48,595 nucleotides of DNA, taken from Guillardia theta CCMP2712 (lineage: Eukaryota; Protista; Cryptophyta). The stretch covers positions 1-48,595 of the forward strand of contig NW_005434499.1 of assembly GCF_000315625.1 (NCBI RefSeq), read 5' to 3'. Numbering within the stretch: the stretch's first letter is position 1; each line of letters begins with the position of its first letter. A program made the translations under genes and the position numbers. This document shows positions 1 to 47,647 of this stretch, piece by piece. Under the pieces are notes generated by a model. It made no database searches. It was not told the origin of the DNA and saw nothing but the letters and a program-made list of their open reading frames with translations.

Positions 1-102
1 CATCATCATCCTCATCGCCATCATCATCCTCATTGCCATCATCATCATCATCATCATCATCATCCTCATCGCCATCATCATCATCATCATCATCCTCATC
101 GC

Positions 103-1920: not shown

Positions 1921-2410
1921 CTCATTGAGACTCTCGGGCCACCGCCGGGGAGGCCGCGCCGCAGTGCCGGGCCTCAGGTAGCGGACAGAGGGCCCCGCGG
2001 TGCTGAGCCTTGGAGCCTACTCCGGGCGCGGGGCCCATGGCACCGTGACTCGGACGGCGGCCGGGCTGCCACTGAGCCTGGGCTCTCGGCGCCGGGGCCC
2101 GTGACTCCCCGGGATGAGTCGCTCCGACTTGAACCGGGGGCCGGGGCCCGGGCGCGGTGGCTGGCAATGACGCGGCTGGCTCAGTCAAGCCTTTCAAGTG
2201 ACTGCGGCAGCCCTGGCGCGGCCCGCCGGCCGGGGCCGGCCGGCCCCCCCCCCCCGCCGGACTCCGGTGACCGAGTCCCCGGATCTGATCATGATCCGAT
2301 GGTCCCCAAGGGCCCCGGGCCGGCGACTCCGCGGGGCGACTCTCGCCACTTAGTGACTGGTAGTATCGGCCACCCCAGGATTCTCTGAACCATTGAGGGG
2401 TGGTAGTCAT
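1921..2410. repeat. GC-rich, palindrome-rich intergenic island 1
   Basis: Dense ccgg/ggcc/cagtgac/actcgg words between divergent genes, with no credible coding frame. Confidence 0.6.
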
Positions 2411-2592
2411 CGGGGTCTAGAATCAGTGGGCCTTTCAGTTAAGTGACCGTGCCGGGGGTGATCAAGAGGAGCAGTACCGGTGTCCAAGCCAAGTAAAAGT
2501 ACTCTTTCAGGCGGGTGGGTGGTCAGAAAGGTTGGGTGGGGTATAGAGAGCGCGAAGGGTCGCGGTGGATTGGCTCAACCCTTCAGGGCGGC

Positions 2593-5500
2593 ATGCAGGA
2601 TGGGGAGCGGGAAGGGATGGCAGGCGGAAGGAGGTCGAGCCGTGCGAGGGAGAGGAACGGCCAAGTCCTGATCCTCGTCCTGTGCTGCTCAGCGCTGATC
2701 GGTCTGACTCTCCTGCACGTCGAGTCGGTGCTCAAGACGAGGACGACGCTCTACGGCAACAGCATCCCTGACCTCGACTCCGACTTAGAGGGCATCAAGA
2801 GTCTAGAGCGCCAAGTTCATAACGAACAGGCCGTGCAAAGTCGTCTCTCCTCCAACTACCACAAGACCTTCACGAGTGAGTCCAAGGCTCCTTGCACAGG
2901 GCTGCACTGTGCTCCACAATCGCCGGAGGAGTACAGGTCACAGCAGAACAAGTACGTGAGCGCCGTACAGTCTGGGCAGGAGGATGATAGTGACTGCTGC
3001 GGAGATTCAAACTCAGACTCTGCAAGTGCCTCACCCGATTTCTCGATCAGCTCGATTGTCAAAGCGCTCAAGAGGAAGTTCAAGAAGATGAAGCAGCACT
3101 TCCGTGAAGTGCGGGCAAGCTACCTGCATGGGGAGCCGAGGAGGATGAAGATCCTGGTAACTGTGCGAGATTGTTCTCCATGGAAACTCACTGCAGCTCG
3201 TGTTAGATCAATCCGAGGGGGCCCCGCGGCTTCACAGGTCCCCCCGGAGTAGCAGGAGGTCCAGGGGATGAGGGCGAGCCAGGTATGGGCGGGACAGCAG
3301 GATGGTGATGTTTCCTCTGACCGATGCGTGACTGCCAGGCTCGATCGGTCCCGTGGGTCCCAAAGGGCCGAGAGGATTTCCCGGTCCACCTGGACCAGCG
3401 GGGAGGAGAGGCAAGAAGGGCATGACAGGCTCCATCGGTGTGCTGAGCCCCGTCGCAGTGCCTTCACCTCGCTGACGACTTGCTGTACAGGAAAGCCCGG
3501 TGCCAAGGGGCCCACGGGCCTCCGAGGACCGCAAGGCCCTGAAGGCGATCAAGGTCCTCCTGGAGCTCGCGGCATCCCTGGTGCCGCAGGTGCTCCTGGA
3601 ACAAACGGGCCCGACGGACCTCCTGGCCCCCCAGGCCTGCCGGGAAGCGTCGGACCTCCCGGCCCTCCCGGTCCTGCGGGCCCTCCGGGTACGGCTGGAA
3701 CGCCAGGGAAAGCTGGAGCTCCTGGTCCTCAGGGCATCCGCGGAGACACTGGGGCGCCAGGAATCATAGGAAGTGTGGGGCAGCAAGGGCCCGCTGGGTT
3801 GAATGGGATCGGGCCGAGAAAGATTGAGGCACTAAAGGTTGAAGGAACGAATGGCTGGGGGTCTTGCTATAAGATGTCAAGGACGTGCAGAAAGTTGGGA
3901 GTTGAGATCAACTTCTGTGGAGAATGCAAACCGCTCTGTCCTGATTGCGACGCCACCGTTGGTTTCAAACTTGAGAACAAGGAAGGGTTGCGGTACAAAG
4001 ACTATGGGTTCGGTGACGCCAATACTCAAAGTGGCCGCAACGTCCCCATCAATGCCTGTCTGCTGGCAAGGTATGGAAACAAGGGGAAATATTCCGTCAT
4101 ACCCGGGAAGAAGAGCCGCTTTGTGAAGCTCCCTGGGAAGTCTGTCAAGGACCAATTCTACTGGTCTGAACTGTACCTGACGGATCAATGACTTTCTCAA
4201 GATGTTATTGCAGGCATAGCAACTGTACCGAAGGCGACAAATCGCAAGAATCTTGTTGCAGCAACTCGCGCGTCATTCCCTCGGGGTTTGACTGGTAAGC
4301 ATTCACAAGCCTCAGTCACGGAAATGATTTTTGACATGACGCAGGGAGTCATTCTCGAAAGGAAGTACATGCAAGGGAGATGACGACCAGGTATCTTCCC
4401 GCAAGTCATCTAAGTCCTGACCCTCAATCCAGCGACCACCTTTGGGAGAGCTGTTCTGCATGTTCGATGAAGAACTGTACAGGACGTATGCCATGTAAGA
4501 GATGCTTGTCTATTCGACGTAAACATGAGCTGAATGTTGTCGTTCAGGGGTCCGCCTCCAACTGAACCACCTCCGAACAAGCTCTCAACGTCCGAATCAC
4601 TGAAATCGAGTTCGGGTTTTGGCGGAAACTATCTGTTGTCAGCCAATGGCTTGTACACCGCTATCATGCAGACTGACGGGAACCTGGTGGTTTACCGACA
4701 AGGCGGATCAGCCTTGTGGAGTACAGCTACTTCCGGTGAAGTCTCAATTCCTTTAGTCTTATCTTGATCTTCCTTCAGGGCAAGGAACTGGCCAATATCG
4801 AGCAGTGATGCAGGGTGATGGAAACTTTGTGGTCTATGATTCCAAGAACAAAGCTCTTTGGAGCTCCGTCACATACAACAAGAAAGGATCTTACGTCATC
4901 ATGCAAAACGATGGAAACTTGGTATTGTACACCGCAGCGAACAAGGTAATTCAAAAGAAGATTTGCTTCGTACTGTCGTTAATCTTGAAAAGAAACAATC
5001 CTTGTATTCAAGTCTGAACCTCTTATCTTTTCCATATTCAGGCACTCTGGAGCTCTGGGACAGCTCAAACTAGTGAAGTTGCTTCAGACATCGAAGTTGC
5101 TCGTGGAGATGGCATCTGTGTCACCTCCATTTGCTTCGCAAGAGAGCAATGGACAGCTTTGAAAGCTTTGTCGCAGGTAGCACCCTTGCTGTGATTGCTT
5201 CGAGTGCTGTTGCATTACCTGACGCGAGAATCCAGTCTCATTTGGAAGCTGGGCATGTTGGATTCAATGTACAGAATCAAGTCTCGGAGAGCAAGGTCAT
5301 AACATTTCAAACCAAGTTCTCTCAAACTCCATACGTTTTCAACTCCATCACGTCGTTTGCTTCACACCCCACATACACAAGATGGGCCTACAACCTCCAA
5401 GCTACCGCGCGAAAGGGTTCGGTCAGTCTGATTTCGAGCAAAATATACGGAAGTGGCGGGCTGGAAGAAATTTCTCAAGATTACATAGTGCTCTCTTCAA

Positions 5501-7018
5501 AGCTTGCGGGGAAAGGTTCGCAGTTCTACGAGGCGCGGGAGCCACAGGATGGAGATAACAAGAAGATGATCCTGTGCCTGGGACGAGCATGCAGTGATGC
5601 GTCGATCTTTGAAAGGTTGTCTTACATGAGCAATGCACGGATGGAATCCGGGCGAGAGAAGTTCCAACAAAATCCAAGCTGTCAACAAAGTACTCAGTCT
5701 GTCTCTAGGTGGATACCTTTTAAGAATCGCTTTCATTCCACGCCAACTGTGATTTTGAGCATTTCGGAGCTTGACCTTTGTGGCCGATCGAACATCCGAA
5801 TGAGCGTTCATGTTGCCTCAGTCAACCAGAATGGTTTCACAATGCGTGTGCAATCTTGGGCAGATACATATTTCAAGTCTACCTCGGTCGACTTCCTGGC
5901 GATTTCAACTGAGCTGACCACGTACGCAAAACCTTTCCGTCCCTTGTTCCCAACTCCATTTGATTTGGTCGGCAAGTCAGCTTGCATCGGCGTTGAGTGT
6001 ATCGATGAAGACGATTTCGTCAACTTGATTCAAGTCTCCAACTGGAGGGTCGAGGTCGGAACACTGGCAGGAGGGTATTACTGTGGCTCGGGCGTTACCA
6101 CACGTGACGTGGTCTTCACCAATGCCTTCCCCGAGAAGCCGGAAGTGAAACTCTTTGCCCGACACATCGACTCGTGTATCGGCGGTTGGAACAGGGGCCA
6201 GCTGAGCGTGACGGTTCACTCCATCAGCACCAGTGGCTTCAAGTACACGCTGCGCGGTCAGAACCTGTGGTGGGCAACATACGATTATATCGCTATCTCG
6301 AAGCCCATGCTCAACCCCGCGAAAGAAAAAGAGAAACCAGCGCCTCAGGAGAGCGTGAAAGGTATGAGGATGCCTTTCTCACCCTCTCAACTCCCCCTCC
6401 CTCCCTCCCTCCCCTCCTCCTCTTCACAGGGGTTTCACACATGCCATGGCAGGGAAAGGAACGTGGGGAGAATGCTTCGAGTACGGGGAGCAGTGCAAAC
6501 AGCTTGGAATCACAGACAACCTGTGCGGGCAATGCCTGCCGCTATGCAAGCACTGCGACAAGCAGACTGGTTTTATCCTCAAGAATCTCGAAGGGCTCAG
6601 GTAGGGACACTGAAGTTCCTCGTCCTCGCCCTCATCGCTTCTCAGGTGGGGGAGGGAGCATCTCGGCTTCGACGACAACCGAAACTCCCAGGGCGAGTTC
6701 GCTCCTCGCAACTACTGCATGTTGGCGCGATACGGAAACAAGGGGTCCTTTTCTGCTGACGACTACCCGTCCGACAAGAGCTACACCACGAAATCCTTCA
6801 AGGTCCACGACCAGAAGCATGTGTACGCTAACTGCGGGAAGCACGCCCATGGCGAGTCCCAGTGCTGCGCGAACTCGCGACTGATCCCGTCCGGGTGGGA
6901 CTGGAACCGGTTCGCCCATGGGGACTCGTGCGGTGGCGACAGCGACCTTGACTACCCGTCGAAGGAGCTGTACTGCTACTTCGACTACGAAGACTACAAG
7001 GAGAAGAAGAAGATGTAA
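2593..7018 (+). CDS. Membrane-anchored collagen-lectin mosaic protein (TM, coiled coil, collagen, Cys-rich domain, B-type lectin, 3x H-type lectin, Cys-rich domain), ~1242 aa, 13 exons
   Basis: Hand-spliced exons: 2593-3156, 3207-3282, 3339-3437, 3491-4163, 4214-4294, 4345-4390, 4433-4485, 4548-4735, 4779-4945, 5042-5176, 5236-6361, 6453-6600, 6646-7018. All introns are GT-AG with compatible phase; total 3729 nt. Contains 53 Gly-X-Y triplets, three QxDxNxVxY motifs and an H-lectin pattern ([21 protein letters not shown]...[12 protein letters not shown]). Confidence 0.85.
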
Positions 7019-7059
7019 CAGTAAACCCCCGACGCTCTTGCTTTCTCCTCCTCCCCGTC

Positions 7060-10000
7060 TCACCTAGAGAGCTCAGGAGGTCTCCACCACAACACCCTGT
7101 TCTTCCCCTAGTCCACATGACAAGCGTGAGGCTCTTGTCGGAGCGAGGGGAGCTCACCTCGAAGTCAAGCACGTCCTCTTGTATGTTGGGGTCCTTGGCC
7201 TTGAGCCATTCCACCAGATCCTCGTATGTTCGCACCATCTTGCCGTCCCCTCTCTTCCTCCTCGGAAACTCCTGCTCATCCCCTGAGTTCCCATCCTCCT
7301 CCCACCGGCGGCCTCCCGCACCTTCCAGTACACACAGCAGGGGACACAAGCAAAGGGCTTGCGGAGGGCAAGAGCATAGTCCACCATGTCGCCGACAGCC
7401 TGGCAAGTGCAGATTTCATTTTCAGCAGCAACATAGACACTCGCCTCCTTTTTACCTGATCCGGATGCATGCCGACCAGGATGGAACAGGAGCGGAGAAC
7501 CCTTAGAGCCTCGGCTGCAGCACTTCTCAGCTCATCCTCTCCCTCTGCCTTCGCTGCTTCTCTACCAGCATCTTCGATCTCCTCTCCGTCTCCCGACTTG
7601 CTCGCCTCCTCCTGACTGCCTCCCTCCTCTCTGTTTCATCAAGGTCTCAGAAGGAGCCGGGGCATGTGCGAACGTTGGGACAGACGTCATCGACGGCGCG
7701 CCAGCGTCGTCTGGAGGAAGTCACACTACACAAGAGCCGATCTACTGGATCTGTATCACCCTCCTGCCTTGCCTTCTGCCTGGGGTACAAGTGATCCGCC
7801 GTCTCCTCGCTCGAGGGCTTCAATCCCTTGGTGGTCCACACAAACTGAAAGGAGGGAGAGCGTTGAGAGATTTCATCGCGATAGCAGAAGACGCCCACCT
7901 CCTTGCTCCTCCTCACAGAACTCGTGAAGAATTCCTGCCATTCCTGCCCCTCCTTCTCCTCTGTCGACAAAAGTTTAACTTTCACTTTCCCAGCAGGAGG
8001 AAGAGGGGCAGACCGTGTTGGAGGACGTGGGATAAGAGCGGCGCATCGAAGAACAATCGGAGGTGAGTGGGAGAGACAGGTTGGCTGTCAGCAGACACTG
8101 ACGGGTCGATGTACATGTGCATGAGCGGATTTCGCCAGTAGATGCTGAAGGAAGCTAGTCAACGCAGAGGAGAGGAAGGAGGAGAGGAAGGAGGAGAGGA
8201 AGGAGGAGAGGGAGGAGGAGAGGAAGGAGGAGAGGGAGGAGGAGAGGGAGGAGGAGAGGAAGGAGGAGAGGGAGGAGGAGGAGAAGGAGGAGGAGAGACC
8301 TATACAGCAGCTTCCTCCTATAGCTCGAGAGCTCCAATGGTCTCGGATCCACCACCGTCGTTGGGAGTCTGCCAGTATTTGAGGTCATCGTCAGCCTCCG
8401 CTAGCGACAAGAAGTGGCAGGAGAGGAGGGAGGGAGGGAGGGAAGGAGGGAGGAAGGGGAGAGGAGGAGGCGGGGGGGGGGGGGANNNNNNNNNNNNNNN
8501 NNNNNNNNNNNNNNNNNNNNNNNNNNNNNNNNNNNNNNNNNNNNNNNNNNNNNNNNNNNNNNNNNNNNNNNNNNNNNNNNNNNNNNNNNNNNNNNNNNNN
8601 NNNNNNNNNNNNNNNNNNNNNNNNNNNNNNNNNNNNNNNNNNNNNNNNNNNNNNNNNNNNNNNNNNNNNNNNNNNNNNNNNNNNNNNNNNNNNNNNNNNN
8701 NNNNNNNNNNNNNNNNNNNNNNNNNNNNNNNNNNNNNNNNNNNNNNNNNNNNNNNNNNNNNNNNNNNNNNNNNNNNNNNNNNNNNNNNNNNNNNNNNNNN
8801 NNNNNNNNNNNNNNNNNNNNNNNNNNNNNNNNNNNNNNNNNNNNNNNNNNNNNNNNNNNNNNNNNNNNNNNNNNNNNNNNNNNNNNNNNNNNNNNNNNNN
8901 NNNNNNNNNNNNNNNNNNNNNNNNNNNNNNNNNNNNNNNNNNNNNNNNNNNNNNNNNNNNNNNNNNNNNNNNNNNNNNNNNNNNNNNNNNNNNNNNNNNN
9001 NNNNNNNNNNNNNNNNNNNNNNNNNNNNNNNNNNNNNNNNNNNNNNNNNNNNNNNNNNNNNNNNNNNNNNNNNNNNNNNNNNNNNNNNNNNNNNNNNNNN
9101 NNNNNNNNNNNNNNNNNNNNNNNNNNNNNNNNNNNNNNNNNNNNNNNNNNNNNNNNNNNNNNNNNNNNNNNNNNNNNNNNNNNNNNNNNNNNNNNNNNNN
9201 NNNNNNNNNNNNNNNNNNNNNNNNNNNNNNNNNNNNNNNNNNNNNNNNNNNNNNNNNNNNNNNNNNNNNNNNNNNNNNNNNNNNNNNNNNNNNNNNNNNN
9301 NNNNNNNNNNNNNNNNNNNNNNNNNNNNNNNNNNNNNNNNNNNNNNNNNNNNNNNNNNNNNNNNNNNNNNNNNNNNNNNNNNNNNNNNNNNNNNNNNNNN
9401 NNNNNNNNNNNNNNNNNNNNNNNNNNNNNNNNNNNNNNNNNNNNNNGAGGGGGGGGAGAGGTGAGGGAAGAGGCAATGGGGGAGAAGCGGGGGGAGAGAG
9501 AAGGTATGGAGGGAGCAGGAAAGGAAGGAAGAGAGGCAGGAGGGATTTACTTGTTGAGGTTTGCAAGCTCAAAAGCGAGCTCTCCCTTTCCTCCCGCGAT
9601 GTCAAGGATGCCAGTCCCTGCTGCAAGCTCGTCTAGACTGAAGTGATCTAGGAGCCAGCGACGGAACGATCCCACCTTGCTGCTGTTCCTGAGTTTGCTC
9701 CTCTTCCATGAGCCTATCCTCTTCCTGTCCGGAAGCTGTTTCCTCAGTTCCTCTAACCCCTCCACTGGGTGCAGGTAAAAGCAGAGCTCCCCGTAGCCGC
9801 ACGATCCCTTCTTCAACCAGTGAGGACAGACAGGAGGAACAAGCTCTCCTCCTCCCACAGCGTCCTTGGCGCACTGTAGATGGCACCAGGCATGTGCTGA
9901 TACCTTCCTACCCCCAGGATTCAAGCTTGCCCCTCCCTGCTTGATGACGGGCCATATCTCCTCCCCCTGCTCGACTTTCCCTTGACAGAGGATGCAGTCA

Positions 10001-10651
10001 TGAGACAGAGCGGCGCGTTTGATCGGGATCTTAGTCAACGGACGATCGCTCAACGTCATCGACTTCATTCCTTTCTCTTGCGAGTTCCACTCGCCCACCT
10101 CTCCTTCAATATCGTGACCTTCGCTCTCCTCAAGCTCTGCTCTCTCTCCCCTCCTCCCCCCCTCTACTCTCTCTCCTGCTTCCTCCCTCCCTCTTCCTCC
10201 TTCGCTTCTCCTCCTCCTCTCCTCCGTCTCTCTCAGCATCTTCGCCTCCTCTTCCCGCATCCGCACGTCGAACACATGCGCCATCGGCCCCAACAAAATT
10301 CGCCCTCATACCCGCGCAAACCACAGCCATTGGACCACGCCCTGGACCACGCCACACTGCACGCCACAGACCACTGACAGACCACGCGCCCACATGCTGC
10401 AACCGTTGATACGGTAGCACCAGACCTTGAAGAAGCACCGTGAACGGCTCAGCTGCTCCAAGTCGACTCAGCTTGCTGAGGACCGACAGACTTCTCAGCT
10501 CAGGTGGGTTGGCTGTGCGAGGCGAGCTCCCGGGCGACTCGGACCCGGTACCGGGGCGGCTCCGAGCAACCGCCGCCGGAGCTGTTCGCGCCAACGTGGC
10601 AACCAGCTCCACGACTGATCCGATACACGCAAGTTGACTCAGTTCCATCAT
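7060..10651 (-). CDS. CCCH zinc-finger plus SAM-dependent methyltransferase-like protein, multi-exon, spans a gap; N-terminus uncertain
   Basis: CPHWLKKGSCGYGELCFYLH (C-x8-C-x5-C-x3-H); ILDIAGGKGELAFEL (SAM motif I-like); TVVDPRPL; VGMHPDQ; KPFACVPCCV; last exon GKNRVLWWRPPELSR*. Confidence 0.7.
8486..9446. other. Assembly gap (N run) inside a purine-rich intron
   Basis: N characters. Confidence 1.
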
Positions 10652-11034
10652 GAGTGCCGTTTATCGATCATGCCCACATATTCGGGGCATCATTCAGTCG
10701 CTTCTGAGACTGTTCAGGGACTGTTATCGAGCGGCGGCCACATTGTGGGAAAGATGATAGAGACTTAGTTTCAAGTTCTTCGAGGGCGAGAAGTTGCAGT
10801 ATGTTCCACCATCTATCAGAACGAAAGTTCAGCATGGTTTACTTAGCCGAGCCAGGAATATACAGCATAAACGAATAAAAACACTAAAAGACCTCGCAAA
10901 TCTCAGATTTGCAACAGACGAACGTAATCATCAAGTGGATCACGACGAAGTTTGAGGAAATCTTTAACTGTAATAGGACGATCTAGGCAAAGAGAAGACA
11001 ACATTGCCTTGCAAAGCGTCTGGCACAGCCTCAA

Positions 11035-11704
11035 TCAGCCTGTGTTGGAATGGCTTTCTCTGCAGAAGTCACACCACACAGATGGCGCGGGCATGATCTC
11101 GTCGTCAGTTCGATCAGCAATATGCACAAACCACCGCATCCATTCCCTGTCGAAAGAAGAGCTTCCTTGTGTTGATTGCTGCAGATCTTGATGGCCCCCT
11201 GCTCCCTTGAGGATAGCTGTGCTCCCACTTGTACCTGGTGAAAGTTTGTGATCTGACTCCTTCGCGGACTTGTCACTTGCTCCTTTATCGTCTCCCTCAT
11301 CCTCTTCATCCTGGTTTTGATCTGCTGGCCTTACTCTGGTGGTTGCGGAATCAGGATCGCTGCTCTCCGTCTCTTGGATCTGATTGCTTCCCCCCGATGC
11401 TTGGTTCGGCTTTTCGTAAGGCCATTTCTTGAGCCCCAGTCTTCTGCATACTCCTTTGAAGCATGTCAACGAGATACCCTGTGTAGACAGGACCAGTCAG
11501 ATTCTTCTGCAAAGAGCTCTGCAGCCGATTGCATACCAAAGATCTTGCCGCGCTTGACTGCTTCATTCCGAAGAGCCTCTGAAGGACCTCGAGATCAACC
11601 TCTACCTCATGCTGCTGTCGCTGGTTGACCTCAGCCCTTGGCATGTCTTGCAGTCTTTTTCTCCGTGGATACACCTTGACCTTCTGTACACCTTGATTGT
11701 TCAT
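11035..11704 (-). CDS. RWP-RK domain transcription factor, 2 exons, ~203 aa
   Basis: Exons 11704-11537 and 11478-11035 join in phase 0 to give VDLEVLQRLFGMKQSSAARSL|GISLTCFKGVCRRLGLKKWPY, the RWP-RK consensus. Confidence 0.9.
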
Positions 11705-12159
11705 CGCTGTGTGTCTTGTTCTTGTGACGAAAATTTGATGAGATTGAATGGGAGAACGAGCCTTTGATCTATTTTAGAAGCCGAGGACTGTCACAACCTT
11801 CTGCGTCCCTTTTGGTCACCCCGGTCCTGATAAGAACAAGGGCGGCTAGTAAACGACTTCCTCCCTGCCGCCCTCGGTAAGATCTCAAACCTCACTCGTT
11901 GGCGTCGGTCGGGATTCGTAAATGAGTCACACCTCTAGATTGCAGTCATACGGGGAGTATCCAGAAGGGGGTAGGGGGTAATCCAAGAGTGTTGCAAGGT
12001 GGGGTAAACTTCAGGCTTATGAGGGGTACGGGTTGACAGTTGTAGAGGTGGGGTTGTTTTGCCTTCTTAGACCAAAAGGACGCAAATGAGAATATCTGAA
12101 ATCGCGCATTTTCATGCCATTGAGAGGGTCAAAGAAGATTCTAGTACGTCATTCAAAGA

Positions 12160-13040
12160 CCATGACCGCCATGGCCCCGCCGTGACGCCGTGAGCTCTCG
12201 ACTCGCCGAGTCCGATCGGATCAAGTAATGCCGCTGATGATGCCATGATCACTGTCATCCGCCTCCCGGCCGCCGGGCGGCCCGGAACTTCAAGAACTCC
12301 GCGGCCGCGCGGAACTTCCCCGGGCGGCCCCTGCCGCTGCCACGGTGAGCCCGGGCCGGGGCCGGCCCGGGGGCCCGGCCGCCGCGGCGCGGCAGTGGAG
12401 TGACTTAACAGTCTGAGAGTCAGTGAGTCACGCGGAACTGCCGCCGGGGGAAAGTCACTGCAGTACGGTACCCGGGTAGCACCCGGGTCCTGCGGCCGGG
12501 GCACTGGGCATGATCAACGGTTGCAACCGGGTTGCCAGGACTCCGAGGGCCCATTGACCGACTCGTCACCCGCCGCCGGGCTCGCCGCCCGGCCGGGATG
12601 ATTCGACTCCGACTCTCAGTTCACTCGGCACGTAGGCCCAGTGTAGCCCCGTCAGTGAACGGTTGAAGTTTGAACTTGCGGCCTGGGTCATCATAGGGGC
12701 CGCTGAGTGAGCCTCGGAGACTCTAAACGGTCTCAGATCGGACCGTACTCGGCGAGTCACCGGGTCGGCCCGGCGGCGGGCCGGGCCGCAACTTAAGACG
12801 GTTCACTCGGCCCGGATGGACGGACTCAGGCAGTACGGTACGGTCGGATCCGATCAGAATTGGGCCCGGGCCCTGAGCCTCCGCATGCCGTTCAAGGCAC
12901 TGCCGTGATTGGACGGTGCCGGCCGCGGGCCGGCGGGAGCCGGGCCGGCTTGCGGCTATGCGGCAGCGCCGGCCCCGGCGCCGGACCCGGCCCGACTCGG
13001 GAGTCAGGGCAAGCCGCGCCTTCCGAAGTTCGGAGGACTT
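12160..13040. repeat. GC-rich, palindrome-rich intergenic island 2
   Basis: Same short-word vocabulary as island 1; lies between the divergent RWP-RK and USP genes. Confidence 0.6.
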
Positions 13041-30459: not shown

Positions 30460-31395
30460 GCCCACGCACGAAAGGGGAAGATGACCACCTGGTTCTGACG
30501 AGGATGATTCTTTTATACCTTCGAGGAAGAAGACTGGAGTACCCGTCTCTTGGCTGGAGAAAGTAGGGGTGTTCTCTCCTTGGAAAATGACAAGCTTTCC
30601 TCCTTAGATGTTGAATATCCCGTCAGCCCTTCGAGAGGAAACCGAGACAGCCAACTGTCCTTTCTTTTCAGTAAACCTTTGTCTGATTCGGACTCGGTTC
30701 CTATGAGCTCTGACACGCTCTTCTCTGCGCTTTCTCGCATCTGACAGGCTCCACTCAGCCTGACCTCCTCGAGGTCAAGATAACCTACCGACAAAGCCTT
30801 AGAAGCTTGTTGTCAGAGCTAATAGGAACCGAGCCCGAGTCAGACAAAGGCTTACTGAACAAGAAAGGACAGTTGGCTGTGTCGTACTCGTGTTCGAAAC
30901 TGACTTCTCCTGGATGACCCAGGATACTCTATTTCAGTGTGAATCTTGTGCTGAAAAGGACCCCTCTGAGGTTTTTGTACCAGGAACCGTTCACCCGTGG
31001 TGGCTTACAAGCTGAAGAGGACGGGGTTCTCTTCCCTACTGCGAGCGAGCAAGGTTTCCTCTCGAAGTGCTGATGGCATCACGGTTCAACATCCAAGGAG
31101 GGAAGCATGTCAACTTCTAAGCAGAGGACACCCCTGCTTCCTTCAGCAAGGAGCACTACCCCTAGTCCTTCCCTGAGTCACCAAGCCTTAATCATCAGGA
31201 TCAGCCTCTTCAGCTAGGTCTGCAACCGGTAACAGCCACGAGGGCTACTGGACCTCTGGAGTACAACCCCTGTGGGGCGACAGTGTGCCAAGTACGGGTG
31301 GTATCTCCTTTACTGGTACGGAGATGAACCTTTATAGAAGGATCGTCAACAACTGCTGAGGTGGTCTGTCCTTTCCCTTGCTGTGTGTGCTCGTG
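30460..31395. repeat. Degenerate inverted duplication (three nested arm pairs around a 95-bp loop)
   Basis: 30644-30715 is the reverse complement of 30811-30883; ~30550-30643 of 31053-31150; weaker match ~30460-30520 with ~31331-31395. Confidence 0.85.
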
Positions 31396-31544
31396 TTATC
31401 TGAATATCAAGGCTAAGCCTAGCCTTGAGTGCTAACCTCCCGTACAAGGTGAGGTTTCAGCACTACAGATACTGCTTCGACTCCACTCTATCGCGCCTGC
31501 TCCGTCCTTTCCTCCTCCTCCTCCTCCTCCTCCTCCTCCTCCTC

Positions 31545-31974
31545 NNNNNNNNNNNNNNNNNNNNNNNNNNNNNNNNNNNNNNNNNNNNNNNNNNNNNNNN
31601 NNNNNNNNNNNNNNNNNNNNNNNNNNNNNNNNNNNNNNNNNNNNNNNNNNNNNNNNNNNNNNNNNNNNNNNNNNNNNNNNNNNNNNNNNNNNNNNNNNNN
31701 NNNNNNNNNNNNNNNNNNNNNNNNNNNNNNNNNNNNNNNNNNNNNNNNNNNNNNNNNNNNNNNNNNNNNNNNNNNNNNNNNNNNNNNNNNNNNNNNNNNN
31801 NNNNNNNNNNNNNNNNNNNNNNNNNNNNNNNNNNNNNNNNNNNNNNNNNNNNNNNNNNNNNNNNNNNNNNNNNNNNNNNNNNNNNNNNNNNNNNNNNNNN
31901 NNNNNNNNNNNNNNNNNNNNNNNNNNNNNNNNNNNNNNNNNNNNNNNNNNNNNNNNNNNNNNNNNNNNNNNNNN
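31545..31974. other. Assembly gap (N run)
   Basis: N characters. Confidence 1.
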
Positions 31975-32437
31975 CTGTCTACATTCCCCTCCTCCCTTCT
32001 ACCCCATCTCGACCCATTTCTGTACCCCTATCTCCCTCCCGACTCCTCTACTTCTCCGCCACCCCTACCCCCATTCCGATTGTTCCTCCACTCTTGGTCC
32101 TAGGGGGCTCCTATGATTTCTAGGACCTAATCCTATCTAAATTCGGACGACCGTTCGGCCATGCAGTGTTGAGGCGCCGCTTCTCCTGCTTCCTCCTGCT
32201 CCTCCTGCTTCCTCCTGCTCCTCCTGCTCCTTCTTCCTCTTGCTCCTCCTTCTTCCTCTTACTCCTCCTGCTCCTCCTGCTCCTCCTCCTCCTTCCTCCT
32301 CCTTCCTCCTCCTTCCTCCTGCTCCTCCTTCCTTCTTCCTCCTGCTCATCCTGCTCATCCTACTGTTTCTCCTGCTTGTTACTGAACAGAATTTTTCTTG
32401 TCGCACATCAGCTCTTCCTTCCCCACCATTAACTGTT

Positions 32438-43976: not shown

Positions 43977-45477
43977 AGGTCTGATTCTTGGACCAGGCAT
44001 TCGTTCTCATCGCCAATGAACTTCCAGTTTAAACATCCTTGGAATGTCAAGAGGTATTAGACATTCCTCCTCTCCCTCCCTCCCTCCCTCCCTTCCTCCC
44101 TCCTCACCCTTCTGCTTGCCTCCCTCCCTTCCTCCCTCCTCCCCCTTCTGCTTGCCTCCCTCCCTCCCTCTCTCCTCTGCGTTTTGTTTTTGCTCACTTC
44201 ATCTCGCAGACTAGTGGAGAGAAAGTTGGTAGTCACCCTCGAAGAACTCTTCCACGGTATGTAGGAGGAGGATGGGGGATGCGGGAGCATGGAGGAGGAG
44301 GAGGAGGAGGAGGAGGAGGAGGAGGAGCGCGGAACTTTAGGACGACTTCGAGTCCTTCACTCAGTCTCTCCCTTGCTCTCCCATATTCCTCTTGCAGTCC
44401 TTTTGTCTCTCCTCACGGTTTATTAGGTGGGAAGCGAATGGAGAAAACTTCCGTTTATCATCTCGATCCTGTACTCCCCTTCCTCCTCTTCCTCCTCCTC
44501 TACTTACCACCTCCTCCTCTGTCTCCTCCTCAGCTACCTTCTCCTCCTCCTCCTCCCTTCTTTCTCTTCCCCTCTTCCTCCTCCTCTCCTTTTTCTCTCA
44601 TCTCGTTGCTCTCCCAGGGAACTGGTTTTGCTGTTCCCGTCGACAAAACATTCACAATCGACGTGAGGTTATGCGACCTAAGAAGCAAAGAGACTGACTC
44701 CTCCTCCTCCTCCTCCTTTTCTCTCCTCCTCCTCCTCCTCCTCCTCCTCCTCCTCCTCTTGTTTAACTCCATCTTCGTTTTCTACATGTTTTCCTCTATT
44801 TCTCTTCCTCTTTCCCTGTCCTTTCCTTTTGTACTTGCAGATCAAACGAGGATGGAAAGAAGGCACGCGAATAACATTTGAGGTACCTGCTGCTCATTCT
44901 CGTGCTCGTGCTCGTGCTCGTGCTCATGTTTGCCCTTCTCTTCTCCTCTCCTCTTCTTCTTGTCTGTCTTTCTCTTATCAAGTCGCAGGACGACGAAGGG
45001 CTGCAGAGCGTGTGTTTCGTGCTGAAAGAAAAGTCGCACGAGGTGAAGAAGCGAGGGAGAGGTGGAGGAGAGAGGGAGAGGTGGTGAAGAGTGGGGACGA
45101 AGGAAAGGGGTTGGGGAAAGGGGGGGGGAGAAGGTGGTGGAGGAGGAGATGGAGCAATTTGATAGGCGGGCAGTTTTTTAAGAGGATTGAGAATGATTTG
45201 ATCTACGTCTGTGAGCTCTCAAAGAAAGGTATCGATTCTTCCTCCCACTGCCTCTCCCTCTTTCCCTTCTCCTGCTATCCTCCCTCCCTCCCTCCCTCCC
45301 TCCCTCCCTCCCTCCCTCCCTCCCTCCCTCCCTCCCTCCCTCCCTCCCTCTTTCCCTCCCTCCCTGCCTCCCTCCCTCTTTCCCTCCCTCCCTGCCTCCC
45401 TCCCTACCTCCCTTCTCTCAACTAGATCTGCAGAGGCGAAGGAAGGAGTCAACGTCACCATCCCGACTATTGATGGG
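42776..45477 (+). CDS. Type II Hsp40/DnaJ (DNAJB-like) with N-terminal signal leader; many small exons, 3' end in gap
   Basis: YYELLGL; [18 protein letters not shown]; [29 protein letters not shown]; VTLEELFHG; [13 protein letters not shown]; [10 protein letters not shown]; VTIPTIDG. Confidence 0.88.
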
Positions 45478-45501
45478 GTACGAACAGTGATCATCCTCCT
45501 C

Positions 45502-45539
<38 letters not shown>

Positions 45540-45551
45540 CTCCTCCTCATC

Positions 45552-46347
45552 NNNNNNNNNNNNNNNNNNNNNNNNNNNNNNNNNNNNNNNNNNNNNNNNN
45601 NNNNNNNNNNNNNNNNNNNNNNNNNNNNNNNNNNNNNNNNNNNNNNNNNNNNNNNNNNNNNNNNNNNNNNNNNNNNNNNNNNNNNNNNNNNNNNNNNNNN
45701 NNNNNNNNNNNNNNNNNNNNNNNNNNNNNNNNNNNNNNNNNNNNNNNNNNNNNNNNNNNNNNNNNNNNNNNNNNNNNNNNNNNNNNNNNNNNNNNNNNNN
45801 NNNNNNNNNNNNNNNNNNNNNNNNNNNNNNNNNNNNNNNNNNNNNNNNNNNNNNNNNNNNNNNNNNNNNNNNNNNNNNNNNNNNNNNNNNNNNNNNNNNN
45901 NNNNNNNNNNNNNNNNNNNNNNNNNNNNNNNNNNNNNNNNNNNNNNNNNNNNNNNNNNNNNNNNNNNNNNNNNNNNNNNNNNNNNNNNNNNNNNNNNNNN
46001 NNNNNNNNNNNNNNNNNNNNNNNNNNNNNNNNNNNNNNNNNNNNNNNNNNNNNNNNNNNNNNNNNNNNNNNNNNNNNNNNNNNNNNNNNNNNNNNNNNNN
46101 NNNNNNNNNNNNNNNNNNNNNNNNNNNNNNNNNNNNNNNNNNNNNNNNNNNNNNNNNNNNNNNNNNNNNNNNNNNNNNNNNNNNNNNNNNNNNNNNNNNN
46201 NNNNNNNNNNNNNNNNNNNNNNNNNNNNNNNNNNNNNNNNNNNNNNNNNNNNNNNNNNNNNNNNNNNNNNNNNNNNNNNNNNNNNNNNNNNNNNNNNNNN
46301 NNNNNNNNNNNNNNNNNNNNNNNNNNNNNNNNNNNNNNNNNNNNNNN
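45552..46347. other. Assembly gap (N run)
   Basis: N characters. Confidence 1.
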
Positions 46348-46520
46348 ACAGAGAGAGAAGACGGGAGGAGCGAGGGAGCGAGGGAGCGAGGGAGGGGAGT
46401 GGGGGAGGGGCGGGAGGAGCGAGGAGCGAGGAGCGAGGAGCGAGGAGCGAGGAGCGAGGAGCGAGGAGCGAGGAGCGAGGGAGCGAGGGAGGGGAGTGGG
46501 GAGGGCGGAGGAGGGAGGAT

Positions 46521-47647
46521 CAGTGATCATTCGCTGTAGGTTCGCCGCAGCAGGAGGCATCTGCTTCCTGGTCCTCCGTCATCCCCTGCGAATTCTTCGC
46601 CTCCTCTGGATTTTGAGCACGCAGCTGCTCCTCATCTCAAGTCTCCTCAACCTCTACACGTGAAGTGCTGGAGGAGGAGGAGGAGAAGGAGGAGAGGAGG
46701 AGGAGTACGACGAGGGCCAAGGACGAGGACGAGGACGAGGATGAGGACGTGTCAGGAAGGGAGCATAGAGTGTAGTTGCGGGAGAAGGGAGGAGAGAAGA
46801 TGGGGATCAGGCATGAGGGTTTTGATTAAATGTTACACTTGTAGGGAGGGACAGAGAAGGAGAGGGAGAAGAAGGAAGGAAGTGGAGACAGAGGAGGAGG
46901 GAGTTGAGGAGGAGGAGGGAGGGGGAGGAGGGAGGGGGAGGGGGAGGAGAGTCAACGGACAGCCCTCAAGTTGCCGCTAGGAGATGAACAGCATCTCCTC
47001 TCTCCCTGCCGCTGCAGCTCCTTCTGCACCTGCACCAGCAGTCAGCAACGGAAGTGAAAGACGGTCCAGCACGGGCCCAGCAGACCCCTCGCTCACCTTC
47101 CGACCGGGGGGTCGGGCTGCCGCCCAGCTGACCCTGGCGACCTCCGAGCTGGTGAAAGAAGGCGTGAAGCTCGCTCCTGCTGGGGGGAGGCGACGACAGG
47201 GAAAGCTCTCCCCTCTCAGCCTCCGGCGGAGCCTTCAGGTCGGCCTGTAGCTCAGGTTCAGCTGTGCTTGAGGGAGGAGGGAAGGGACGGGTGAGGGGTT
47301 GGGTGGAGGGGGCATTTTCTCAGCTCTCACCCCGTTGGAGCGAGACAAGGAGAGGAAGAGCTCGTCCTCTAGGCTCGTCCTCCTCTCGTTGGAGCTGCTG
47401 CGGGGGGAGGGCGTGTTGGGGCCACCGTTGACTGCGGTTTTGAAGAGAGAGTCCTGCTGGTGGTCAGCTGGAGGAAGAGGAGGGGGGGGAGGAGGTACGT
47501 CGAGAAGAGGAGAGGAGGAAGGTGGGGTGACAGGATAGTCCGCAGAGAGAAGTCCCGAGCTGGAGAAGGCCTGCGTGGTAGAAAGTCAACTGAGAGGGCG
47601 GAGAAAGGAGGTGGAAGAGAAGGGGGTGAGGGACAAGGACGAGGACA

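Follow-up and report, generated by a model that had tools for sequence, protein, structure and literature searches.

A spliced nuclear gene of the cryptophyte Guillardia theta encodes a predicted collagen-stalked membrane protein with B-type and H-type lectin heads

Collagen-stalked lectins and scavenger receptors are usually regarded as inventions of animal innate immunity. In the class A scavenger receptors and CL-P1 (SCARA1-5), a type II membrane anchor is followed by a spacer or helical segment, a collagen region with a conserved cluster of Lys and Arg residues, and C-terminal recognition heads, which are SRCR or C-type lectin domains. These receptors are type II homotrimers and bind microbial and polyanionic surfaces in a multivalent manner (PMC8353498). 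The collectins (MBL, SP-A and SP-D) and the ficolins also carry trimeric clusters of sugar-binding heads on a collagen stalk. Collectins are soluble proteins, in which a Cys-rich N-terminal region and an alpha-helical neck are combined with C-type carbohydrate-recognition domains (CRDs) that depend on Ca. Here, we describe a gene of the unicellular alga Guillardia theta CCMP2712, located at 2593–7018 on the forward strand of contig NW_005434499.1 (positions 1 to 48,595 of this contig, 48,595 nucleotides in all, are called the window), whose predicted product combines a type II anchor and a collagen stalk with a B-type lectin, three H-type lectin repeats and two copies of a domain with 12 cysteines (12-Cys domains D1 and D2; Table 1).

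The region is one expressed nuclear gene of G. theta. In a six-frame reading, the genomic open reading frames (ORFs) across 2500–7100 look fragmented, with a stop, for example, at 4189–4191. Joining of the forward frames at GT..AG sites gave a coding sequence (CDS) of 3738 nt, which encodes 1245 amino acids and a stop codon, and all 12 introns, ranging from 42 to 96 nt, have GT..AG ends. The assembled contigs of sequencing runs were compared with positions 2300–7400 of the window. The transcript contigs of two independent runs, X1 and X8, contained all 12 junctions as GT..AG joints, and one X1 contig of 5065 nt, starting at 2588, spans the entire CDS without ending at the 4189–4191 stop. On the other hand, the three contigs of DNA run X14 were colinear with the genome and contained none of the 12 joints. 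A previous interpretation made from the letters of the window (the sequence-only reading) had spliced five ORFs into one protein of ~1242 residues. It was right in proposing a single spliced gene with GT-AG introns and one long product, but the gene has 13 exons and the product is slightly longer. The three introns that it had named (4164–4213, 4495–4547 and 5177–5235) were all seen as joints in RNA contigs, and its list was incomplete; the additional introns include two in D1 (4295–4344 and 4391–4432) and three in or close to the collagen region. The acceptor of intron 11 at 6452 keeps the frame and reproduces in D2 the start of the first Cys domain.

The transcription of the gene was also seen in other data. 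The DNA runs contained 0.99 of the sampled gene words, and the probable RNA runs, from at least five studies, contained ~0.75, which is the share expected without introns. The raw 3'-biased RNA reads of run X21 lie on the plus strand, and 11 of them enter poly(A) past ~7040. The poly(A) site is located at ~7040, with a 3' untranslated region of just ~22 nt, and the 5' end of the mRNA is at or upstream of 2578–2588. On a public contig of 5162 nt, an independent gene call (P0078, 723 aa) matches residues 523–1245 of our model exactly. In the searches for relatives, the G. theta protein was recovered only as fragments, namely P0001 and the C-terminal 723 residues of P0078.

The deduced protein has a single strong hydrophobic segment. 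The top 19-residue hydropathy window (2.63) begins at residue 25, directly after the Arg-rich tail, and this single peak conforms by sequence to the type II topology of the class A scavenger receptors, as the sequence-only reading had proposed. In an alignment of the N-terminal halves, the orthologues have the transmembrane (TM) segment at the equivalent place, and their cytoplasmic tails are unrelated. The linker and the pre-collagen segment had no match in a Pfam scan. The last ~40 aa of the linker, next to the collagen region, are basic and conserved, and their columns D..I...KAL..K...M.Q.FRE.RA...G...I.V.PRGPRG are kept in seven relatives. This segment may be a helix for trimerisation or nucleation.

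The collagen region matched Pfam Collagen (PF01391, 3e-18). It had been counted as 53 Gly-X-Y triplets without interruption; the region is indeed uninterrupted, but consists of 54 triplets. Its composition includes 23% Pro, eight GPP triplets and Pro at 18 of the 54 Y positions, and a basic cluster, GRRGKKG (nt 3401–3421), is conserved inside it, as is the Lys/Arg cluster of the class A scavenger receptors. When the stalk was aligned with those of P0091, P0166, P0181, P0123, P0101 and P0061, its length was exactly 54 triplets with zero indels in every relative, including the paralogous groups of P0101 and P0061. Three islands, PRGPRG, GR(K/R)GKKG..GSIG and PGKAG, are conserved along the stalk. 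These islands may be partner-binding sites, or the stalk may serve as a length ruler.

The 54 uninterrupted triplets predict a triple-helical homotrimer. The stalk and head of the window protein are without a single reference sequence, and the three-copy structure prediction was performed with the Teleaulax orthologue (P0091, residues 296–525, comprising the last 16 triplets and D1). This model scored 0.44, while the best control was 0.00. Among 30 proteins solved as same-chain pairs, 21 attained the mark used, and among 23 solved as single chains, none did. The runs agreed in at least 67% of the contacts, and the predicted local distance difference test score (pLDDT) of the partner was 35. 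The predicted interface is a contact staggered by one residue, and is confined to residues 296–343, within the collagen. In addition, the prolyl-hydroxylase-type domain PF13640 is encoded at 15 or more loci of the G. theta genome, which we count as support for the trimeric form.

Both lectin families expected from the sequence-only reading, as well as the collagen, were matched in Pfam. B_lectin (PF01453) was detected with 43.5 bits against a cut-off of 32.4 (4.7e-11), and H_lectin (PF09458) with 102.5 bits against a cut-off of 24 (1.3e-29), in three stretches. The B-type lectin also matched sequences in the Protein Data Bank (PDB), i.e., SCAfet (2e-26), pyocins L1 and L2 (~1e-22), the garlic and snowdrop agglutinins, and LlpA-type bacteriocins. 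Of the sequence features, the presence of QxDxNxVxY in all three subdomains speaks most strongly for a functional mannose-type lectin. Each H-lectin repeat opens with a C-x-x-x-x-C hairpin and a helix, after which comes a beta-sandwich, and the repeat period is 133/136 aa here and 136/135 aa in Teleaulax; the first repeat (R1) is divergent. The second repeat (R2) matched the snail Helix pomatia agglutinin (HPA; 9e-7, in a gapless alignment) and the coral lectin 3wmp (2e-6). The lectin identities given by the sequence-only reading are therefore sound at the level of the families and of the three mannose-site motifs, but the binding site of HPA is kept only partly, and in R2 only. Gal/GalNAc binding by the H-lectin repeats is thus a family-level expectation. 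An AlphaFold2 model of residues 672–1072 had a mean pLDDT of 62.6 and a predicted template modelling score (pTM) of 0.53, in which R2 and R3 were confident and R1 was poor. We also considered an intrachain pseudo-trimer of the three repeats and set it aside; the domain arrangement was unreadable in this model, and MAFFT mis-registered the repeats.

The two Cys domains, of ~170 aa and with 12 Cys each, and the proline hinge following D1 were found as the sequence-only reading had described them. Using the last exon as a query, 76 proteins sharing the Cys domain, a family of small size, were obtained at E <= 1e-3 by HMMER among 1.84 billion representatives. The alignment of 29 copies has the core GLRF..SFDDN....G....RN.C.LARYGN.G ... 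HWYGNC ... CCSN ... G.DW..FA.GN.C.GD.D.D ... C.F., and a Pfam scan of the 29 members assigned them to no family. The AlphaFold2 model of D2, made from this 29-copy alignment, had a pLDDT of 94.7 and a pTM of 0.91. The 12-Cys domain had no match in the PDB by sequence or by profile, in BFVD by fold, or in the ESM Atlas by shape or by features, and a Foldseek search of the PDB with the D2 model gave nothing usable (best E 1.3). A kinship with SRCR had a weak lead from VIA-align only, while hhalign of the Cys domain against the alignment of the G. theta SRCR domains gave a probability of 0.4%. That the domain is an enlarged SRCR-like fold is a lead and not a finding, and we would lean somewhat against it.

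In the tree of the Cys domains, D2 grouped with D1 and its orthologues with the support of 95/91, which makes it a duplicate of the post-collagen domain. The same core was also found in a bacterial protein, P0030 (802 aa; locus L004, a JGI metagenome contig, gene 10001–12409), which ends in it after fn3 and Ig-like domains. The gene for P0030 adjoins an Rnf operon on an 85-kb bacterial contig. Since P0030 carries the core, the domain family spans bacteria and cryptophytes.

The sequence-only reading knew of no described protein with this domain combination, and our search of the literature on cryptophyte lectins, collagens, SRCR proteins and the periplast found no description of the combination or of the Cys domain. 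The uniqueness that it implied did not hold, since the architecture is shared with other cryptophytes. Teleaulax amphioxeia P0091 (EukProt, 1059 aa) is colinear with residues 61–1069 at 40.6% identity over 1016 columns, and has the same order of the TM segment, linker, collagen, Cys domain, Pro hinge, B_lectin and three H_lectin repeats, without D2. Two environmental relatives, P0166 and P0181, have the same layout; they were the only new relatives from the search seeded with P0078, which was dominated by bacterial multi-B-lectin proteins. Among other environmental sequences, P0002 has tandem Cys domains after the last H-lectin, and P0008 and P0123 have a true SRCR domain (4.5e-19) after the lectins, although caution is needed for these two, as their gene calls seem to read partly through introns. 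Three features of the window protein, namely its pre-collagen segment, its stalk and D1, recur in Teleaulax P0101, in P0061 and in a G. theta paralogue on contig 5 (L002). This minimal paralogue (G000:C5:255603-258815, minus strand) consists of a basic tail, a TM segment, a helical linker, collagen and one 12-Cys domain, and has no lectins. Its layout suggests that the stalk and the Cys domain together form the core module and that the lectins are additions to it.

The G. theta genome itself is rich in these modules. The Collagen hidden Markov model (HMM) matched at least 137 places and SRCR at least 30, and at no fewer than nine loci a collagen match lies just upstream of SRCR matches on the same strand. 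One of these loci, L019 (G000:C33:28800-35000, minus strand), with a TM segment, a coiled-coil-like segment, collagen and two SRCR domains, has a MARCO/SR-A-like layout in an alga; further ones are on C165, C188 (three loci), C72, C94, C113 and C32. H_lectin was found only in the window gene and at one other locus, L021 (G000:C2:312000-318500), where an ORF (2719–4569, plus strand) encodes 616 aa with several H-lectin-like repeats and no collagen nearby. Within G. theta, the union of a B-lectin with three H-lectins and a second Cys domain at the C-terminus is confined to the window gene. Judging from these domain matches, the architecture is not a one-off, but forms part of a broader set of cryptophyte proteins in which a collagen stalk carries SRCR or other heads.

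Table 1. Features of the gene and of its predicted product (positions are those of the window; two dots denote a span that may include introns)
Feature	Residues	Nucleotides (strand)	Introns	Basis or remark
Whole coding region	1-1245	2593..7018 (+)	12, GT-AG	13 exons; 1245 codons + stop 7016-7018
Exons 1-7		2593-3156, 3207-3282, 3339-3437, 3491-4163, 4214-4294, 4345-4390, 4433-4494 (+)
Exons 8-13		4548-4735, 4779-4945, 5042-5176, 5236-6361, 6453-6600, 6646-7018 (+)
Basic N-terminal tail (six Arg) and predicted single TM/signal-anchor helix	1-24; 25-43 (nt 2665-2721)	2593..2721 (+)		Hydropathy
Linker	44-192	2722..3218 (+)		Alignment; Cys C101, C106, C135/136 conserved; no Pfam match
Conserved basic pre-collagen segment	150-192	3040-3218 (+)	3157-3206	Alignment with relatives
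Collagen region, 54 uninterrupted Gly-X-Y triplets	193-354	3219..3813 (+)	3283-3338, 3438-3490	Pfam
Neck, 10 aa	355-364	3814-3843 (+)		Between collagen and D1
D1, first 12-Cys domain	365-533	3844..4492 (+)	4164-4213, 4295-4344, 4391-4432	HMM of D1 and D2
Proline-rich hinge	534-548	4493..4590 (+)	4495-4547	Kept in orthologues as PAGPP..P
B-type (GNA-like, bulb-type) lectin	556-660	4612..5065 (+)	4736-4778, 4946-5041	Pfam and PDB sequence matches
Three QxDxNxVxY motifs of B_lectin	575, 608, 639	4669-4695, 4811-4837, 4904-4930 (+)		All intact
Three H-type lectin repeats, ~133-136 aa each	672-1057	5099..6315 (+)		Pfam, three stretches
Repeat R1		5099-5559 (+)	5177-5235
Repeat R2		5560-5964 (+)
Repeat R3		5965-6315 (+)
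Lys/Pro-rich linker	1058-1072	6316-6360 (+)		Precedes D2
D2, second 12-Cys domain	1073-1245	6361..7015 (+)	6362-6452, 6601-6645	HMM, AlphaFold2 model, tree

Downstream of the lectin gene, a convergent spliced gene lies within 7040–8000 of the window on the minus strand, with introns at 7107–7156 and 7271–7320 (CT..AC on the plus strand). The 3' ends of the two genes are within ~70 nt of each other, and contigs of X1 and X8 join them. The X1 contig running into the minus-strand gene is an assembly bridge of the abutting 3' ends, not a single transcript. Immediately downstream of this neighbour are purine-rich simple repeats, such as the 12-mer GAGGAGAGGAAG repeated ~10.5 times at 8167–8292. The window also has AT-rich islands at 8001–10000, 31001–32000 and 45001–47000, with a GC content of 0.29–0.32 as compared with ~0.55 elsewhere.

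Compared with the animal systems, the order of anchor, collagen and lectin heads agreed with the layout, and with the analogy to the class A scavenger receptors and CL-P1, that the sequence-only reading had drawn. The heads are different. No SRCR or C-type lectin head was detected by sequence in the window protein, which instead has the B-lectin, the H-lectins and the 12-Cys domains, and SR-A, MARCO and CL-P1 have a far longer cytoplasmic tail than the short and unconserved one found here. Outside the Gly-X-Y region, the protein matched no PDB chain of the SCARA group and no Pfam family of that group, and no direct comparison with SCARA sequences was made. The collectin features of secretion, an alpha-helical neck and a C-type CRD were likewise absent; the window protein has a predicted membrane anchor, no cleaved signal peptide, no Lectin_C, a neck of only ~10 aa, and lectins of unrelated folds. 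What would be common to both is a collagen stalk with trimeric clusters of sugar-binding heads, one of which probably has mannose-type specificity. The domain content thus points to convergence, not descent, as the origin of the resemblance to animal collectins and scavenger receptors.

The lectin domains, on the other hand, are true members of the H-type (HPA, discoidins, SLL-2) and GNA-type (snowdrop, garlic, pyocin L, putidacin) families. The known lectins of these families are small soluble proteins or bacteriocins, whereas those of the window protein are placed on a membrane-anchored stalk, and canonical H-lectins are homotrimers of single domains, whereas three tandem repeats are present here in each chain on the collagen stalk. 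Other cryptophyte collagen-stalked proteins are likewise ordered as anchor, linker, collagen and a variable head, but the G. theta collagen-SRCR genes differ from the window gene in both stalks and heads.

From these features, the following working of the protein can be proposed. The TM segment would act as a type II signal anchor, placing everything past residue 43 outside the cell, and all the domains downstream of it are of extracellular, disulfide-rich kinds. Three chains would zip into a collagen triple helix of ~46 nm (162 residues x ~0.286 nm). Nucleation would probably take place at the conserved segment that precedes the triplets, as happens in membrane collagens and SR-A, and the cysteines of the linker would probably staple the trimer. 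The stalk would hold three head arrays at a distance from the cell. Per trimer, a maximum of 9 mannose-type sites would be presented together with as many as 9 H-lectin domains (Gal/GalNAc-type by family) and with 6 Cys-rich domains, a geometry expected to give a high-avidity binder of repetitive glycan surfaces. The preferred ligands would be foreign, i.e., bacteria, viruses or other particles, and the protein may function as a passive capture, agglutination or defence lectin, like the collectins, CL-P1 and the class A scavenger receptors. Because its cytoplasmic tail is short and not conserved, the protein would not signal by itself. Foreign ligands are favoured by the fact that the lectin families are typically non-self binders and that the relatives exchange their heads like recognition molecules. 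B-lectin bacteriocins such as pyocin L and putidacin bind the sugars of bacterial lipopolysaccharide, the H-type coral lectin SLL-2 binds algal cells, and a mannose-binding lectin is a feeding receptor in Oxyrrhis. Selection on the layout is suggested by its colinearity with Teleaulax P0091 and by the identical length of the stalk, with its conserved motifs, in all relatives. A trimeric, collagen-stalked surface lectin directed against foreign particles, which arose by convergence, is the reading that we tentatively prefer, and we put it at a little short of an even chance.

Several observations weigh against this reading. The cytoplasmic tail is 24 aa here and ~5 aa in Teleaulax, is not conserved, and contains no endocytic motif, unlike those of SR-A, MARCO and CL-P1; such a tail speaks against a role in signalling or endocytosis like that of the animal receptors. 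To our knowledge, G. theta is not an established phagotroph. R1 is divergent, and R2 retains the equivalents of Arg63 (R885) and Trp83 (W905) of the HPA site, but Asp26 and His84 differ, and the Tyr89 position also differs or shifts. In the three-copy model the head was folded poorly (pLDDT 35), so that head–head contacts were unreadable, and the positive score, obtained for the orthologue and not for the window protein, may reflect a memory of collagen structures in the model. In addition, the exactly conserved length of the stalk suggests a structural ruler, and would suit a spacer no less than a receptor.

The last point leads to the most serious rival, to which we give a lesser but considerable weight, as it is unlikely rather than remote. 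The protein would be a structural tether or spacer, in which a trimeric stalked lectin binds the glycoproteins of the alga itself and sets the distance of a periplast component or glycocalyx from the plasma membrane. The invariance of the stalk (54 triplets, no indel), even between paralogous subfamilies, and the short, unconserved tail would suit such a role. The contig depth was high in every transcriptome containing the gene, which fits an abundant and apparently constitutive structural protein, and the 137 or more collagen-repeat matches in the genome and the extracellular glycoprotein periplast layer of cryptophytes also agree with it. However, multivalent GNA-type and H-type heads are typical of non-self recognition, the relatives swap heads (SRCR, extra Cys domains) like immune-type receptors, and a periplast protein with a known gene, with which it could be compared, is not known.

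Cell–cell recognition within the species is improbable. In this case the lectins would bind glycans of a partner cell in the adhesion of gametes or morphs, as lectin–glycan pairs do in other algae, and a multivalent protein projecting far from the cell would be suited to it. However, transcript contigs with the gene came from ordinary vegetative cultures in five or more studies, sexual reproduction is not known in G. theta, and there was no sign of a partner-specific pair of paralogues.

Fibre proteins with collagen repeats are encoded by cryptophyte polinton-like viruses (PLVs), one of which has an H_lectin (PMC12220804). That the window gene is the fibre gene of an endogenous PLV rather than a cellular gene, as this precedent might suggest, is nevertheless very improbable; it has twelve spliceosomal introns, an N-terminal membrane anchor by prediction and colinear orthologues in another genus, lacks endosialidase-chaperone and phage-tail domains, and has a spliced cellular gene as its neighbour. 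The equally slight chance that the stops in the genomic ORFs, such as 4189–4191, mark several separate genes or an assembly artefact is refuted by the transcript contigs crossing all 12 junctions (the 5065-nt contig of X1, and the same joints in X8 and none in the DNA run X14), in line with the identity of P0078 to the C-terminal 723 aa and the colinear orthologue.

Returning to a surface lectin against foreign particles, a wider proposal can be made for the family, which we regard as doubtful at present. Cryptophytes would have independently built a trimeric, collagen-stalked pattern-recognition family with interchangeable heads (B-lectin, H-lectin, SRCR, PA14 and 12-Cys), which captures or neutralises bacteria and viruses, and in its 12-Cys domain there would be a new fold for the binding of glycans or ligands, perhaps derived from SRCR by a large enlargement, which bacterial surface proteins share. 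If this is true, the cryptophyte family would be the unicellular counterpart of the collectin and scavenger-receptor system of animals. A photosynthetic protist would then use the same engineering as animals, i.e., an anchor, a rigid spacer of triple-helical form and heads that bind sugars in a multivalent manner, made from unrelated parts. The 12-Cys domain is newly defined here, with ~170 residues, a confident model that matches no known fold in the searches described above, and an occurrence also in bacteria, and the stalk is a natural non-animal collagen of strictly conserved length. For the organism, the protein may provide a concrete molecule for the dealings of cryptophytes with bacteria and viruses, or for the building of their poorly understood cell covering.

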